IMG/VR virus record: IMGVR_UViG_3300036944_001289
Coordinates: 145,283 to 209,282 of that record
Length of the DNA stretch: 64,000 nucleotides
Direction: 5' to 3' (one strand)
This document shows positions 37,905 to 61,799 of this stretch, piece by piece (position 1 is the first letter of the stretch; every line of letters starts with the position of its first letter). Below the pieces are notes generated by a model. That model did no database searches and was not told the origin of the DNA. It worked only from the letters and a program-made list of their open reading frames with translations. A program made the position numbers and the translations under genes.

Positions 37905-38059
37905 AAGATTATTTATAAGAAAACCTCTCTTTATATTTTTACGCCGCCCAAAAATTCCCGAAAGGCGTAATACTATCTATATTACCGAAAGTTCCGGGCC
38001 CTATATAGCGTTTCTATTTTTCTGCGCGCGTCGCGAGAATTTCCGAGGGTTCCGAGCTT

Positions 38060-38154
38060 TTTATGGTTCCGAGCGCTCTCTGCGGCGAATATAGAATTTC
38101 CCGCGACTTTTGCGGCGAGAATAGCGCTATTTATGGTTCCGAGCGCTCTCTGCG
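38060..38154. repeat. 25-bp direct repeat x2 in GC-rich non-coding patch
   Basis: TTTATGGTTCCGAGCGCTCTCTGCG at 38060 and 38130. Confidence 0.85.
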
Positions 38155-38555
38155 CAGAGAATTGGGCATGGGGCTCATTATACGAAAGTTCCTTTAACTA
38201 ATAAGTGAAAACTCCTTTGCCCTGGTCTCTGAAACCTTTTTATATGAAAACCTTTTTTGAACTAGAGGTTCCGACTTTTCCGAAAAAAGTTATCTGCGAT
38301 ATAACCACTATCTTTTCTGAAAAGGTTCCTTTTATGCAGCCAAAGGAACATCTATATAATTAATGTAACTATTTATTATGAAGCGACAACCATTAGCTTA
38401 TCCGAAATGTATAATATGAAATATTCTTTTAGGAGTTATATATCAAAGCTTTTCTGAAATGTATAATATGAAGATAGTATATAGCAGTTTCTGAAAAGTA
38501 TAATATGAAGACCAATTAAGGCTACAAATAATATGCAGCCCTAATAAGTGCTAAC

Positions 38556-50505: not shown

Positions 50506-51177
50506 TCATTTTACTAAAAGTGATTTTATATACTCCTCAGTTAGTTGTTCTTTAGTAAGAAAAATAATATTATTATACTGTTCCTTGAGATGTTGAATTT
50601 TTGTTGACTGTACTTGCCTAGCAAAGGGGTTCTTAGGATCTAGGAATAGGTTATAATCTGGTAAAAAAAAGTCACTAAAATAATTATGTTCTATACCTTC
50701 ACTATCTTTCCATCTTATTGGTTTGGGACGTATCCATAAAACTTTTAAATTATCAAGTATATTAGCAAGATTTAACTCCCAACTAGAATCTAGCAGTACA
50801 CCTTTGTACTTAATAGTTTTCTTCTTTAACCGTCTATGTGGTGAGTTTAGTGCTATATTTCGTAATTTTATTTTTGTCTCTTCAGATTGTGATCTTTTTC
50901 CATATTTTACATAAATCAATGCTGCATTCTCTTTTCGATTTCGTTTTTTAATTAGCCCATTTTTAGATGCTTTGCATATAGTTAAGGCTGTGCAGTTGAA
51001 TTTAGTCGCACATTCAGCATAACTTTTACCAGTATCATAATAGTTTTGGACTTCTTCCCAATTTATATCATCATAACGAGTATATGAACATGTTTTACAC
51101 CATCTTAAATGATTTCTTTTGGCGCCAACTTTAAGTCCACTTATATCTTTATCACATGTAGGACAGTATATTATCAT
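50506..51177 (-). CDS. Putative homing endonuclease (Zn finger, HTH, NUMOD-like, PD-(D/E)xK)
   Basis: CPTC..HLRWC; SEETK.KL; SSWE..A..LD; YFSDF.L...LDPK. Confidence 0.7.
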   Translation of the reverse strand: MIIYCPTCDKDISGLKVGAKRNHLRWCKTCSYTRYDDINWEEVQNYYDTGKSYAECATKFNCTALTICKASKNGLIKKRNRKENAALIYVKYGKRSQSEETKIKLRNIALNSPHRRLKKKTIKYKGVLLDSSWELNLANILDNLKVLWIRPKPIRWKDSEGIEHNYFSDFFLPDYNLFLDPKNPFARQVQSTKIQHLKEQYNNIIFLTKEQLTEEYIKSLLVK

Positions 51178-51207
51178 GTAACTATTTATCGGATAGAGCA
51201 ACGAATC

Positions 51208-51571: not shown

Positions 51572-51677
51572 TTTATAATTTTATGAAAGTTCCACCAGCC
51601 CGTTTTTATTGAGGTGGTCGCTGGCTCTCCCTCAGTCGATCATATCCCCAAGCTTTATGGGCTTGGTTCTTGAATGG

Positions 51678-52106
51678 TTAGCTGACAAATACGTTCTCGG
51701 GATTAGCTTCAATATACTCCCCGATTTGCTTAAAAGTTAACTCTCGGTCGTTCATATCTGCAAGACTACCAAACTTATCACCTTGAACAGTTGCAGCTTT
51801 CTTAAACTTACCAACACAATTGCGTAATTTAAGTAATGTTCTTGCGCTATTAGGTAATGTATGACCATCAATATCATATTTAATAAAGGGTAATGCACCA
51901 TGTGGCTCCTCTATCGTTTTGGGTAGCTTTAATTCACCTGTTTCGTTAGCAAGTTTGCAAGCTAGACCAAGACAGCAATACACAGCTGTCTTATTTAACC
52001 GATTAACGGTATGTAGTCGGCTCTTACCTTGACGAAAACGTCCAGATTTAAGAGCATCAATCCAGAGACGTTGAAATGGTGTAAAATTATATGGTTGTTT
52101 GTTCAT
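51678..52106 (-). CDS. Hypothetical, tandem paralogue
   Basis: W.DAL.SG.F.QGK..L; YCCLG.AC; ND. Confidence 0.65.
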   Translation of the reverse strand: MNKQPYNFTPFQRLWIDALKSGRFRQGKSRLHTVNRLNKTAVYCCLGLACKLANETGELKLPKTIEEPHGALPFIKYDIDGHTLPNSARTLLKLRNCVGKFKKAATVQGDKFGSLADMNDRELTFKQIGEYIEANPENVFVS

Positions 52107-52489
52107 GTTATATTATTGAAGTAACGTTGAGGATTTTGTCGAATTTTAGCAGCAAGACATTTATGAGATTCACCCATATCGTTCAATACTGCGAGATCAT
52201 CTCCGCGTTTATCTACTAAGTTAAGCGCAGTTTGAACTGATTTTGGTAAATAACTTCTCCCACCATCAAAAGACACAACAGGTTTACCTAATGCAGCTGA
52301 TACTGACATTTTCTTTGAAACCTTTACTCCATTCTCACGTGCAACAACACAAGCAACACCGAGACAACAATAACTAACCGTCTTACGTTTTATATTGCGT
52401 GTTGCAAGGTGATTTTTACCTTGACGAAAACGTCCAGTTTCGAGAGCATTAATCCAAGCTTCTTGTAAAGGTGTAAAATTGTATTTCAT
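52103..52489 (-). CDS. Hypothetical, tandem paralogue
   Basis: Same motifs; promoter 52498-52513. Confidence 0.65.
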   Translation of the reverse strand: MKYNFTPLQEAWINALETGRFRQGKNHLATRNIKRKTVSYCCLGVACVVARENGVKVSKKMSVSAALGKPVVSFDGGRSYLPKSVQTALNLVDKRGDDLAVLNDMGESHKCLAAKIRQNPQRYFNNIT

Positions 52490-52546
52490 ACTTGTATATG
52501 TTATTCTTGTTCCTGATGCTATTCAGGATGTATGTAATTAAAAAAT

Positions 52547-52631
52547 TGGTGCCGCAGGCCGGACTCGAACCGGCACGCCGTTAAGGCAACAGATTTTAAG
52601 TCTGTAGTGTCTACCATTCCACCACTGCGGC
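52547..52631 (-). tRNA. tRNA-Leu(UAA)
   Basis: Type II cloverleaf; ACAGA-CTTAAAA-TCTGT; long variable arm; CCA. Confidence 0.95.
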
Positions 52632-53035
52632 ATTAATCTCTCAGGTGACACTAACTATTAACCCATTACTCTAATTATTAACAAACAACATTATCACCTG
52701 AGAGAAAATTAAAAAAAGAACTAAATGAAGGATATCAACTTTTATAGTGGTTTAGCCTATCTTCAATGAAGTCAGCGTTAGCTCATAGGTTATATCCATT
52801 ACCACCTTGTATCGCTTAGAAAGCGATTAGCATTTTCAATTAACTTATCTTTTATATGACATAATTTTATAGAAGTTCCAAGGTTAAAAGATTTGATAAT
52901 CTCCATGGTAGTTATTCTGCTATAGTTATTTCAGGAGGGTTTCTCTCTACTGCTGCTGTGCTGCTCACAACATTTGGAGCATCCTAAGACTACCTTAATC
53001 ATCCTAGGCCATTCTTACGAATCGATTATCAAAAT

Positions 53036-53145
53036 TAGTGAAGTGTTATAAGACTCGAACTTATATGTTGTGACTAAATCAACCGGCCCGCTAAGTGTAT
53101 ACGTCATATACCACCGCCTATGTTTACCATTTCATCAAACACCTC
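53036..53145 (-). ncRNA. tRNA-like RNA with 8-bp acceptor and extended anticodon arm
   Basis: Leu-type D arm; ATAAG-TTCGAGT-CTTAT T arm; ends ACTA. Confidence 0.65.
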
Positions 53146-53503
53146 AAAAAACTAATCACATAACAATCAGGTAATCTTCTGCCGCTGGTTACCGGTTACC
53201 TCCGATCCGAGACTTATACATGATAGTTTAAATTGCTATGTGAAGATTATATGAAAGAACAAAAAAATAAAGCCCAGATAGGTTTGACCTGCGTTACCTA
53301 TTATTCGTTTCATCAGCAGGTGAGTCATCCACGAATATATCTATCGTTAGAAAGAACTGGATAAATCAATAAAGAACAAAAATGTTTACGGTTACTTTAC
53401 AATGGCTGTTTTTGATGACTAGTCAGCCCAATTTCCACGAATTTCACCGTTGGATAATTCCGGTTAGAGGTCAATCTTTCCTTGTTACCCTAAGCTATTA
53501 AAA

Positions 53504-53582
53504 TGGTAGGCAGAGTGGGATTCTAACCCACGATCCGAGTGTTATGAGCACTCCGCTTTGGAACGGGCTAAGCTATCTGCCT
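53504..53582 (-). tRNA. tRNA-CAU (Ile2 or elongator Met)
   Basis: GAGTG-CTCATAA-CACTC; compensatory U19-A56; CCA. Confidence 0.88.
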
Positions 53583-53949
53583 GAAAGATTTACAAAACTT
53601 ACAAAGAACAAAAATAATTCTCAATATAGGCCGTTCATACAATACTTTTGCTAATGTACTATTGTATACATCGCACCGTGCGTAGTTCAATTATCCGTAG
53701 CATCGGAATTTTGTAACCACTTATATTGAGAAAAGAACAAAATTAGTGCGTTGTACGTAGGAGCTACCAACGCTAATAGCTGTACTTCACCAGCCTACTC
53801 TAGCTTTCATTACCACTCTGCGCTTTCAAAGTATCGGTAACTACTCATTATACATTTCACTTAAGACAATCACCTGCGGGTGTGTTGCAATATATAAGTT
53901 TCTATCAATTACTATCTAGAAATTGTTAACGAACTCTCTTAACACCTAA

Positions 53950-53965
53950 ATTGTATTAAAGTTCC
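53950..53965 (-). promoter_or_regulatory. GGAAC-N5-TACAAT promoter of the RNA array
   Basis: GGAAC TTTAA TACAAT. Confidence 0.65.
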
Positions 53966-53981
53966 TAGGCTATAATTTTTA

Positions 53982-54305
53982 TTAGCTCAATTTAATGCAG
54001 CAATCCAGATCATAGAAACCTTGCTTATCAAAACCTTCTGAAGCCAATACCTGCGTGTTGATAAAGTCAGCAAGGTTACGAGCATCACCTTCCAGTAGTT
54101 TCAATTTATTAGCTACATAATCCCAATGAGCAAAATGGCTAAAGGTATATGCTCCTTTTCCCATGATACCAATAAAGAAAGATCCTTCATTGCGTATAAA
54201 TCCTACTTGAAACATTGTCCCATTGCCTAGTGCAAGGTTAATAAAACCATGCGTTGAATCTAGGTATTTAAACTCCTTACTCTCAAAAGGTCTAATTGTT
54301 TCCAT
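53982..54305 (-). CDS. Hypothetical protein
   Basis: ATG 5 nt below promoter 54311-54326. Confidence 0.6.
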   Translation of the reverse strand: METIRPFESKEFKYLDSTHGFINLALGNGTMFQVGFIRNEGSFFIGIMGKGAYTFSHFAHWDYVANKLKLLEGDARNLADFINTQVLASEGFDKQGFYDLDCCIKLS

Positions 54306-54502
54306 GTTTTATTTTATATCAGTTCCTGCGGATTAACCAATCTCTTTACCTCTAAAGTAAGCACATAAAGCCATCCAAAAAGCTGTTAAAAACGTACAGA
54401 TTGCATAACCTGCACCCATATTCTTGTATATAAGTGCAGATACTGATCCAAGTATAATACAAGGTACTGTACCATCTAAAGCGATGTATCGTAGTATTCT
54501 TT

Positions 54503-58433: not shown

Positions 58434-59083
58434 AATAGATTGTATTGTTGTTCCTTATACTTTAACATATATAACCAGCCATCACTAAGCCATTTAAGGT
58501 AATCTTCTGCTTTATAAGTATCACCATACCATCCACAAGAGTAAGGATGATGCGCTTCTATAAGCTCAAGACCATTAAGTGTCATTCCAACATCTAGTGT
58601 ACCATTCCAATCCTTTGGTATTTTAATTGGTATCTTTGGAGCAGGTAGCTCTTCTTTACCTAAATACCACCAAGCGGAGATTACCTTCCCTTTAGAGATG
58701 TAATACCTCCACTCATTTTCAAACTCTACGAATTCAGAGCAAAGATGTGGACCAACCTCTACGCTACCATCAGCCATTCTACCTTGATAGCGCTTATAAC
58801 GATCAGCAGGCTTAACATGTATGCCGTTATTGGGCCATTCGTTCTGTACCCATGTATTACGTTTAACTAAAGACTTCGTAAAGTGAGGAAAGTAGTTAGG
58901 CTCAATTTTAAGATCTAAAATAGATTCGATCCAAAGAGCATTACCAAATGGTGTATAGCCTTCTGGAATGCTCTTTGGATCGCTAACTATTACATAAGGT
59001 ATCTTTTGCATAGAGCATGTAGCTACAATCGATACACCATTACGAGTATCTTTAACATCATGCTCTATTGCAAACCCTTTCAT
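58430..59083 (-). CDS. ATP-grasp protein (DUF4343/R2K-like)
   Basis: VKP....K..G; SE.V.F..EWRY; LDVG...G..LIE. Confidence 0.7.
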   Translation of the reverse strand: MKGFAIEHDVKDTRNGVSIVATCSMQKIPYVIVSDPKSIPEGYTPFGNALWIESILDLKIEPNYFPHFTKSLVKRNTWVQNEWPNNGIHVKPADRYKRYQGRMADGSVEVGPHLCSEFVEFENEWRYYISKGKVISAWWYLGKEELPAPKIPIKIPKDWNGTLDVGMTLNGLELIEAHHPYSCGWYGDTYKAEDYLKWLSDGWLYMLKYKEQQYNLL

Positions 59084-59989: not shown

Positions 59990-60045
59990 AGCGAGTTGAT
60001 TTTATTTTTGTTCCGGTTGTTGATTTTATTCTACTGAAAAATTCG

Positions 60046-60354: not shown

Positions 60355-60380
60355 ACCTTATTGTATGGTTGTTCCGGGTG

Positions 60381-61674: not shown

Positions 61675-61799
61675 TTGTGTTTACTGTTTTGGCTATCTCT
61701 TCCAAAAGGGTTTGTTTTTCTTCAAATTCTTCTGGTAGAAGCATATAAAAGTCTATGGCTTTTTCTAGAGAGCTCATAAATCTATTTTGTTTTTGTTCC

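Follow-up and report, generated by a model that had tools for sequence, protein, structure and literature searches.

An array of structured RNA modules in the tRNA-gene region of a distant T4-like phage

Phage T4 carries eight tRNA genes together with the homing endonuclease gene segB and two genes for stable RNAs, rnaC (species 1, 139 nt) and rnaD (species 2, 119 nt), all on one strand. The biological roles of rnaC and rnaD are unknown, and no trans-acting small RNA has been functionally characterised in T4 according to a 2010 review (PMC3014915). The two small RNAs have had no known function for about fifty years. T4-like phages also carry PeSLs (promoter-early stem-loops), mobile regulatory cassettes that join an early promoter to a terminator stem-loop, flank protein-coding ORFs in hyperplastic genome regions, and mark the end points of insertions, deletions and replacements between close relatives (Arbiol 2010, PMC2839356; Comeau 2014, PMC4122927). 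GOLLD, ROOL and other large RNAs of 500-800 nt are often found beside tRNA genes in phages and prophages, and their function is largely unknown. Other non-coding RNAs, including the bacterial Y RNA YrlA and tmRNA, contain tRNA-like domains. In rRNA operons, boxA, the binding site of NusB/NusE that also occurs in lambda nut sites, is necessary and sufficient for the rRNA antitermination complex, for which a chaperone role has been proposed (PMC10250234).

Architecture of the array

The locus lies within a window of 64,000 nucleotides from IMG/VR record IMGVR_UViG_3300036944_001289. The genome is that of a distant T4-like myovirus: its portal protein matches PHROG 213 at E 7.5e-104 and is 31-32% identical to gp20 of cyanomyoviruses, and RNR and helicase genes are also present. 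Positions 52490-53981 contain no ORF above 40 aa. On the minus strand, which is also the strand of the genes, this 1.4-kb stretch holds tRNA-Met, tRNA-Leu and nine other units (A-I), head to tail. A preliminary description from sequence alone had reported a promoter-driven chain of about eight structured RNAs interleaved with tRNAs, and this observation is confirmed. The stems that it named are all present on the minus strand within 1 nt of the coordinates it gave, namely TCTCTCAGGTGA / TCACCTGAGAGA at 52638-52705, TTTGATAATC / GATTATCAAA at 52892-53033 with a GUAA loop, CACATAGCAAT / ATTGTTATGTG at 53157-53242, and TTCTCAATATA / TATATTGAGAA at 53618-53732.

ARAGORN and Rfam find only tRNA-Leu(UAA) at 52547-52631 and tRNA-Met(CAU) at 53504-53582, both with an encoded CCA. 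Rfam covariance models were run at gathering scores on the window and six relatives, and at E up to 10 on 52400-54100, returning only tRNAs and noise. No unit matches an Rfam family, including the GOLLD, ROOL, HDV/theta, Y RNA and small ribozyme models that the preliminary description had named. A blastn search of the region against 50,697 phage records in near and distant modes found only tRNA-Leu matches.

The array lies behind two copies of a strand-specific promoter-like motif, GGAAC-N5-TAnAAT. GGAAC alone, which the preliminary description had taken as the promoter, is not enriched (58 sites against 62 expected), but the longer motif GGAAC-N6-ANAAT occurs at 21 sites against 0.64 expected, 19 of them on the minus strand. 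Most of these sites stand 3-40 nt before an ORF start, whereas the two in this region have no ORF behind them. The upstream copy, P1 (GGAAC TTTAA TACAAT, 53950-53965), has a predicted start at about 53943, the 5' end of unit A, and is conserved in the relatives L126, L130 and L144. (Labels beginning with L denote phage sequences compared with the window, and X3 to X15 denote freshwater metagenome runs that hold parts of the array; the array-bearing relatives were recovered from freshwater metagenomes.) The internal copy, P2 (GGAAC TTCTA TAAAAT, 52864-52879), is present in L130, L144, L146 and L148 but absent from L126, whose array therefore has only the upstream motif. A possible further non-coding RNA behind the promoter motif at 60375 was rejected because a 102-codon GTG ORF starts there. 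No terminator-like site lies in the region.

The units are separated by an array-specific spacer, UUUUGUUCUUU. The sequence TTGTTCTTT occurs 9 times in the window against 1.6 expected, and 6 of the 10 minus-strand copies of GTTCTTT in 64 kb fall inside this 1.3-kb stretch. Spacers lie at 53732-53742 (S1), 53603-53613 (S2), 53371-53381 (S3, with a second GUUCUUU copy at 53351-53357), 53254-53264 (S4) and 52715-52721 (S5, GUUCUUU followed by a U run). The spacer is conserved at every junction in seven haplotypes and is mostly above the median in predicted single-strandedness. An IMG/VR scan for two spacers 100-130 nt apart returned more than 120 chance hits in T-rich DNA, including a protein repeat in L064, none of them related to the cassette.

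Whole units come and go between close relatives at the spacers. Joints at 53731 and at 53368-53371 recur in independent runs and contigs; the former is seen in X4, X5, X6, L126, L130 and L144, and S3 is the left edge of the indel that comprises units D and E. Unit B plus one spacer copy is likewise the unit of an indel. An HNH_2 gene follows tRNA-Met inside the array of L130 and L146, and in the window an endonuclease-like ORF at 50506-51201 lies beside tRNA-Arg and is absent from relatives. IMG/VR scans with conserved 22-26-mers of units A, G and F returned only the source contigs, and a scan of GTDB genomes with the F core found nothing. Distant homologues of the flanking proteins (L005/L129, L132-L135, L142) lie in unrelated phages with no array.

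The units and their comparative support

Thermodynamic support for the units is uneven, with z-scores of -6.9 for I, -3.95 for B, -2.1 for G, -1.8 for E and -0.7 for A, while C, D and H are at or above 0. Between the window and L126, units A, G, H (H3) and I are 0.93, 0.90, 0.87 and 0.92 identical, against 0.66 and 0.65 at third codon positions of the two flanking genes. Many G·U pairs and A-U to G·U changes fit only the minus-strand RNA. Part of the high identity could reflect recent recombination rather than selection, since F and I, for example, are 100% identical between the window and L130. Covariation rests on only 2-5 haplotypes per unit, all from one phage group, and some of the many paired changes in hairpins could arise in one step, by template switching in quasi-palindromes, rather than by selection on the RNA.

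Unit A (53741-53945, about 205 nt) is the first RNA of the array and is present in every relative. It is 92.7% identical to L126, and its five-sequence consensus fold has 49 pairs, 8 with changes on both sides; GCGUUG/CAACGC becomes GCGUUA/UAACGC in L126. Unit B (53618-53731, about 114 nt) is a closed multi-stem RNA with conserved loops AUGCU and UUAGCA that could pair with each other. Against its L146 counterpart (B', 82% identical), all 33 pairs are kept and 7 changed on both sides, compared with 0-1 in slid controls. Unit B is absent from L126, L130 and L144. The tRNA-Met that follows S2 scores 60.2 bits with the Rfam model. Unit C (53380-53503, about 124 nt) contains a hairpin at about 53413-53425 with the invariant loop CUAGUCA on a hypervariable stem, and four haplotypes carry four different stems: UGA/UCA, CUUG/CAAG, CCUG/CAGG and ACGA/UCGU. 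The consensus fold of C has 27 pairs, 9 with changes on both sides, and a pair-count test found 8 such pairs against 0-3 in slid controls.

Units D and E are seen only in the source phage, and their structures are read from its sequence alone. Unit D (53263-53350, about 88 nt) might form a pseudoknot (ATTCGT/ACGAAT interleaved with CCTGC/GCAGG), but it has no stable minimum-energy fold (z +1.0); it is absent from X3, X4 and L144 and replaced in X6 and L130. Unit E (53157-53242, 86 nt) is closed by a 12-bp stem. Lacking homologues, D and E may be junk or very recent acquisitions.

Unit F (53038-53145, 108 nt) is a tRNA-shaped RNA without an anticodon arm. It has an 8-bp acceptor stem, a D arm with GG, a long irregular arm (hp1), a 4-bp arm (hp2) with the invariant 9-nt loop AUUUAGUCA, and a T arm with a UUCGAGU loop, which fits the tRNA form UUCRANY. 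In place of a 5-bp anticodon stem with a 7-nt loop, the anticodon position holds a hairpin of about 34 nt with a 3-6-nt loop, and the 3' tail is ACUA rather than an encoded CCA. The unconstrained minimum-energy folds of F and of its L146 counterpart (F'') give the same five-helix shape; of 25 pairs, 15 changed on both sides and none is broken, and the acceptor, D and T arms are all kept through such changes. The D arm of F shares 19 nt with the tRNA-Leu of L126. F is not hit by the Rfam tRNA model RF00005 at E up to 10 or by ARAGORN at default settings. ARAGORN calls it only at relaxed thresholds and with an invented intron of 18-30 nt, readings that were rejected because the anticodon stems are poor. 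Shared 8-9-mers between units and tRNAs suggested that units C, D, E and X might also derive from tRNAs, but their number is about what chance predicts, and a tRNA origin was rejected for all units except F.

Unit G (52890-53035, about 146 nt) has a 10-bp stem closing a four-branch fold with a GUAA tetraloop hairpin. Of its 43 pairs, 2 changed on both sides, 5 show one-sided compatible changes and 1 is broken; the paired change 52896 A>G with 53029 T>C also appears in X3, X4 and X6. Unit H (52716-52858, about 143 nt, with a conserved core at 52716-52812) has a five-sequence fold of 17 pairs, 4 changed on both sides, and a hairpin of variable length at AGC-loop-GCU. Unit I (52635-52707) is a long hairpin of about 70 nt that ends 5 nt before tRNA-Leu. 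It is 91.8% identical to L126, no pair has changed on both sides, and it is absent from L146. The adjoining tRNA-Leu(UAA) is only 65-67% identical to the tRNA-Leu(UAA) at the same place in L126 and L130, so the gene has been replaced.

Interpretation of the array

The best explanation, held with moderate confidence, is that this is the tRNA/stable-RNA region of a distant T4-like myovirus, expanded into a modular array of non-coding RNA genes. The analysis itself establishes the head-to-tail arrangement of nine non-tRNA units and two tRNAs without ORFs, the selected secondary structure of at least six units (A, B, C, F, G and H), the tRNA shape of F, the conserved array-specific spacer, and the differences between close relatives by whole units, with the breaks at the spacers and HNH endonuclease genes inside some arrays. 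The remainder of the model is inferred and rests on no transcript evidence, including promoter activity, co-transcription, cleavage, stability and function. In this view, the array is transcribed early from the GGAAC-N5-TAnAAT promoters as one or two long untranslated precursors, host RNase P cuts at the tRNAs and at unit F, an endonuclease cuts in the U-rich single-stranded spacers, and hairpin I may be an RNase III site. Individually folded stable RNAs would thereby be released to act in trans during infection, most plausibly by binding or diverting host proteins that handle RNA or tRNA, and the spacer would also serve as the short shared sequence at which modules are exchanged or deleted by recombination.

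The interpretation in the preliminary description is partly supported. A chain of distinct structured non-coding RNA genes interleaved with tRNAs downstream of phage promoter-like motifs is borne out, as is the parallel with T4 rnaC and rnaD, but the alternative of one large ornate RNA is not supported. Its suggestions of processed transcripts and of decoy or anti-defence roles remain hypotheses.

A boxA-like role for the spacer, which the preliminary description had raised, is possible but doubtful, and it is compatible with the main explanation. In this reading, UGUUCUUU would recruit host NusB/NusE (S10) so that RNA polymerase becomes resistant to Rho while transcribing a long untranslated operon, and might help each module fold as it is made, as the rRNA antitermination complex does. 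GUUCUUU matches 6 of 7 bases of the E. coli rrn boxA core GCUCUUU (UGCUCUUUAACAA), is concentrated in the untranslated array, and lies between structured units where it tends to be single-stranded. However, the 3' half of boxA (AACAA) is absent and the bases after GUUCUUU vary, six copies occur in 1.3 kb where rRNA operons use two, there is no boxB or boxC, and the comparison is with E. coli rather than with the boxA of the phage's own, unidentified host. Literature searches for a GUUCUUU variant of boxA found nothing usable.

A more speculative and unlikely reading, though of high interest if true, is that the array is a recombining library of trans-acting structured RNAs, a kind of 'RNA integron' for phages. 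One conserved 11-nt boxA-like spacer would then let RNA polymerase run through the untranslated operon, mark where each module is cut out, and form the junction at which modules are swapped between phages. The modules would be decoys or inhibitors aimed at host tRNA-targeting or RNA-guided defences and would be under diversifying selection, including a tRNA mimic without an anticodon and hairpins with an invariant UAGUCA loop on hypervariable stems.

Other explanations are very unlikely. The units might matter as DNA, either as mobile regulatory or recombination cassettes like the PeSLs or as targets and relics of homing endonucleases, consistent with indels that end at a short repeated motif and with HNH genes inside the array. 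DNA elements do not, however, explain G·U-compatible, strand-specific compensatory changes across 100-200-nt units, and the units sit in line with tRNA genes behind promoter-like motifs. Alternatively, the region might be a graveyard of decaying tRNA genes and other non-functional intergenic DNA in which the stems are chance or relic features. Unit F is visibly derived from a tRNA-Leu, D and E lack homologues, D lacks a stable fold, tRNA fragments occur in the relative L147, and unit content is very unstable. This reading is nonetheless strongly disfavoured, because the units are far better conserved than synonymous sites of the neighbouring genes, substitutions are concentrated in compensating pairs with loops invariant, and F keeps all five helices at 76-82% overall divergence. 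A single large RNA of the GOLLD or ROOL type, or a long structured leader, would suit an ORF-free structured region next to tRNAs and the single promoter motif of L126, but each unit closes on itself and units B, C, D, E and F are independently present or absent in phages that are 87-97% identical elsewhere. Very small proteins are the least likely alternative, since although ORFs of 20-40 codons exist on the minus strand, the two that overlap unit G are destroyed in L126, one by loss of its start codon plus a 1-nt deletion and the other by ATG-TAG, while the base pairs are kept and the substitution pattern follows pairing, not codons.

Comparison with described systems

The spacer resembles PeSLs as a short conserved repeat at the end points of indels between close relatives, but it is 11 nt long with no hairpin, promoter or -10 element, flanks RNA modules rather than protein-coding ORFs, and is confined to the RNA array. 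Like boxA, the spacer sits in stretches, here predicted to be single-stranded, of what would be an untranslated operon that makes several RNAs, although its binding by Nus factors is only conjectured from the similar core. The array shares with GOLLD and ROOL the setting of phage-borne structured RNA next to tRNA genes, but it consists of many small independent modules of 70-200 nt. Unit F, like the tRNA-like domains of YrlA and tmRNA, has the acceptor-type stem, D loop and T loop with which it could form the tRNA elbow that RNase P and other tRNA-binding proteins recognise. It matches no Y RNA, tmRNA or tRNA model, its 5' and 3' ends form the acceptor stem itself, and two hairpins replace the anticodon arm.

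The closest known system is the T4 cluster. In both phages, tRNA and non-tRNA small RNA genes lie head to tail on one strand with no ORFs between them, and a homing-endonuclease gene sits inside the cluster, which here is seen in relatives. T4 rnaC, like unit F, ends in a canonical T arm enclosed by a terminal stem and has an enlarged middle part, but there is no sequence similarity to rnaC or rnaD; blastn finds only a 13-nt T-loop match (E 0.2-0.4). This phage group shows the T4 arrangement on a larger scale, with at least six unrelated RNA families that have comparative support for their structure. Together these provide concrete candidates for working out what phage stable RNAs do, with defined boundaries and natural gain and loss variants, and a simple sequence element whose role in processing, antitermination or recombination can be tested directly. 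Non-tRNA units here outnumber tRNAs nine to two, whereas T4 has two to eight; the units are separated by a conserved 11-nt spacer that is not found between the genes of the T4 cluster; and unit content turns over between phages that are about 90% identical.

Sequence features of the array

The array is carried by IMG/VR contig IMGVR_UViG_3300036944_001289 (209 kb; window G+C content 34%), which is found in two shale-gas metagenomes. Its portal protein matches PHROG 213 and is 31-32% identical to gp20 of cyanomyoviruses, and RNR and a helicase are also encoded; the contig therefore derives from a distant T4-like myovirus with no close cultured relative. From about 38 kb to 64 kb nearly all genes lie on the minus strand, and the array is accordingly read on that strand. 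The observation made in the preliminary description, a chain of units without substantial ORFs, most closed by their own stem and interleaved with tRNAs, holds. No ORF above 40 aa is present on either strand in region 52490-53981, and every closing stem that had been named lies within 1 nt of the position originally assigned to it. ARAGORN and Rfam identify tRNA-Leu(UAA) at 52547-52631 and tRNA-Met(CAU) at 53504-53582, while a permissive Rfam scan (E up to 10) adds only noise.

On the minus strand the region is divided into unit A (53945-53741), unit B (53731-53618), tRNA-Met, unit C (53503-53380), unit D (53350-53263), unit E (53242-53157), unit F (53145-53038), unit G (53035-52890), unit H (52858-52716), unit I (52707-52635), and tRNA-Leu. 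Folding energies compared with dinucleotide shuffles give z-scores of -6.9 for I, -3.95 for B, -2.1 for G, and -1.8 for E, whereas the remaining units are not distinguishable from shuffles by energy alone.

Although GGAAC, proposed earlier as a promoter, is not enriched by itself, the longer motif GGAAC-N5-(T/C/A)AnAAT is real, with 21 sites against 0.64 expected, 19 of them on the minus strand between 38 and 62 kb. Most of these sites are followed within 3-40 nt by an ORF start, but the two sites in the array region, at 53965 and 52879, are followed by none. The predicted start after the first site falls on the 5' strand of the terminal stem of unit A. The motif is a promoter by inference only. 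At many sites (54311-54326, 58439-58454, 51578-51593, 61784-61799, 59999-60014, and 60360-60375, all minus strand) the start codon lies only 3-9 nt after the -10-like hexamer; if the motif is a promoter, these early mRNAs would have no leader or almost none. A dense cluster of GGAAC-containing repeats, for example gcgctcGGAACcataaa, lies at 37990-38350 (minus strand), at the start of the minus-strand gene block, and might be an origin, a terminal region, or a stack of promoters.

The units are separated by a recurring spacer. TTGTTCTTT occurs 9 times in the window against 1.6 expected, and on the minus strand 6 of the 10 GTTCTTT copies in 64 kb lie inside the 1.3-kb array, each between two units. 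The consensus is a(a/u)UUUUGUUCUUU(u/a). In local folding most copies are more accessible than the median 11-mer (percentiles 0.6-0.96), though the copies beside unit D are not (0.30 and 0.46).

Turnover of whole units among relatives

Searches of phage records with blastn and pattern scans of IMG/VR returned only tRNAs or the source contigs, but public sequencing runs from lakes hold partial, roughly 90-95% identical copies. Alignment of the contigs from these runs (X3-X6) to the window reveals that relatives differ by whole units. Positions 53152-53367, comprising units D and E, are skipped in X3 and X4 and replaced by 391 nt in X6; positions 53566-53730 (unit B) are replaced in X4 and X6; and X5 jumps from 52811 to 53731. 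The joint at 53731, directly after a spacer, recurs in three forms.

Retrieval of contigs through the flanking 107-aa, DUF8296, and 106-aa proteins gave six further haplotypes, designated L126, L130, L144, L146, L147, and L148. L144 carries A, tRNA-Met, C, F, G, H, I, and tRNA-Leu. L130 carries A, tRNA-Met, an HNH gene, C, a new unit J, F, G, H, I, and tRNA-Leu'. L126 carries A, tRNA-Met', a new unit X, G, the H core, I, and tRNA-Leu'. L146 carries A', B', F'', tRNA-Met, an HNH gene, H', tRNA-Leu', and a new unit K. L148 carries H'', C'', and others, and L147 carries tRNA fragments.

The tRNA-Leu(UAA) that ends the array (52547-52631, minus strand) is only 65-67% identical between the window and its relatives (L126:1925-2010 and L130:2529-2614) although the flanks are 86-100% identical, so the tRNA gene itself has been swapped; L144 carries the version of the window. 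In L148, a divergent relative, a tRNA-Leu(UAA) at 620-950 is split in its anticodon loop by about 250 nt. The insert gives a weak match to the Rfam group I intron model (659-862, 20 bits against a gathering score of 50, E 0.016), and the exons would restore a normal tRNA-Leu ending in CCA. In L147 (296-660), a tRNA 3' half comprising T arm, acceptor strand, and CCA directly follows a reverse-strand ORF, and a tRNA-Leu-like sequence has a 5' acceptor strand that does not pair and is not called by ARAGORN; these look like broken tRNA genes in the same region. A 231-aa endonuclease-like ORF at 50506-51201 (minus strand; PHROG 15137 and 9019, no Pfam hit) lies beside tRNA-Arg in the window and is missing from L126 and L130. 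L130 and L146 instead carry an HNH_2 endonuclease gene directly after tRNA-Met (L130:922-1455 and L146:702-1235, opposite strand), which looks like homing-endonuclease traffic in the tRNA region, as with T4 segB. The 128-aa ORF just downstream of tRNA-Leu (52103-52489, minus strand) is an extra paralogue of the neighbouring DUF8296 gene (51678-52106). It is absent from X3, X4, X6, L126, L130, and L144, while L146 keeps only its 3' end (about 1820-1973) behind another non-coding unit.

Selection and covariation in the units

Between the window and L126, third codon positions of the two flanking genes are 66% and 65% identical, whereas units A, G, the H core, and I are 93%, 90%, 87%, and 92% identical. 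The units are therefore far more constrained than synonymous sites. Short ORFs are not what is conserved: in L126 one ORF overlapping unit G loses its start codon and gains a frameshift, and the other becomes ATG-TAG.

Comparison of unit B with its L146 counterpart (82% identical) shows 33 of 33 pairs kept and 7 changed on both sides, against 0-1 when the partners are slid by 1-3 columns. The two loops that, as suggested earlier, might kiss (AUGCU and UUAGCA) are conserved while the stems under them change. The consensus fold of unit C, drawn from 4 haplotypes, has 27 pairs, 9 changed on both sides; a pair count in which one helix was shifted by a column found 8, against 0-3 in slid controls. 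One unit C hairpin (53413-53425, minus strand, and the homologous sites in L144, L130, and L148) has four different stems (UGA/UCA, CUUG/CAAG, CCUG/CAGG, and ACGA/UCGU) under an invariant loop, CUAGUCA, and all five differences between the window and L144 in this unit fall in that stem. This pattern could reflect diversifying selection or one-step template-switch mutation in a quasi-palindrome.

In unit G, 43 pairs include 2 changed on both sides, 5 with one-sided changes that keep pairing, and 1 broken. The closing-stem change from A-U to G-C is also seen independently in runs X3, X4, and X6, as 52896 A>G with 53029 T>C. Unit A (5 sequences) has 49 pairs, 8 changed on both sides, but with several breaks in L146, and unit H (5 sequences) has 17 pairs, 4 changed on both sides, and a hairpin of variable length. 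Unit I is conserved, but without changes on both sides of any pair. Units D and E have no homologues anywhere, and the comparative support therefore does not extend to them. Many pairs are G·U or change between A-U and G·U; because these would be A·C mismatches on the plus strand, the RNAs are minus-strand products.

Unit F is a tRNA-shaped RNA and not a tRNA. Its first 26 nt share a 19-nt run with the D-arm region of the tRNA-Leu of L126, and it ends in a canonical T arm plus acceptor strand. The unconstrained minimum-energy folds of F and of the divergent L146 copy both give an 8-bp acceptor stem, a D arm with GG, a long irregular arm (hp1), a 4-bp arm with a 9-nt loop (hp2), and a T arm. 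Across these five helices 15 of 25 pairs changed on both sides, 2 changed on one side, and none is broken, while GCGGGCC, UGAUUUAGUCACA, and the T loop stay fixed. However, the Rfam tRNA model does not score unit F, default ARAGORN does not call it, it has no 7-nt anticodon loop, and its 3' tail is ACUA rather than CCA. The invariant hp2 loop shares UAGUCA with the invariant loop of unit C, a similarity that remains unexplained.

Interpretation and comparison with known systems

What the analysis itself establishes is a modular array of selected, structured RNA genes interleaved with tRNAs, a tRNA-shaped RNA among them, a dedicated conserved spacer, turnover of whole units, and endonuclease genes inside some arrays; early polycistronic transcription, cleavage at the spacers and by RNase P, and action of the products in trans are inferences drawn from this. 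The interpretation offered in the preliminary description is thus supported in part, since a chain of distinct structured RNAs interleaved with tRNAs is borne out but its alternative of one large RNA is not. A graveyard of tRNA genes, one large RNA, and small ORFs are each contradicted by the comparative data.

The core of the spacer matches the E. coli boxA core at 6 of 7 bases, and boxA drives the rRNA antitermination complex (PMC10250234); against that, the 3' half of boxA is missing, there are six copies, and the comparison is made without knowledge of the host. The indel pattern resembles PeSL-mediated shuffling in T4-like phages (PMC4122927), but the spacer is neither a promoter nor a terminator.

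The T4 record shows eight tRNA genes, the homing endonuclease gene segB, and the stable RNAs rnaC and rnaD, whose roles are unknown (PMC3014915), on one strand without intervening ORFs. T4 rnaC folds into a terminal stem, a long arm, a hairpin, and a canonical T arm, which is the plan of unit F, although there is no sequence similarity and T4 lacks the spacer between its genes. The array is a variant of the T4 tRNA/stable-RNA cluster, with several RNA families that are not in Rfam.
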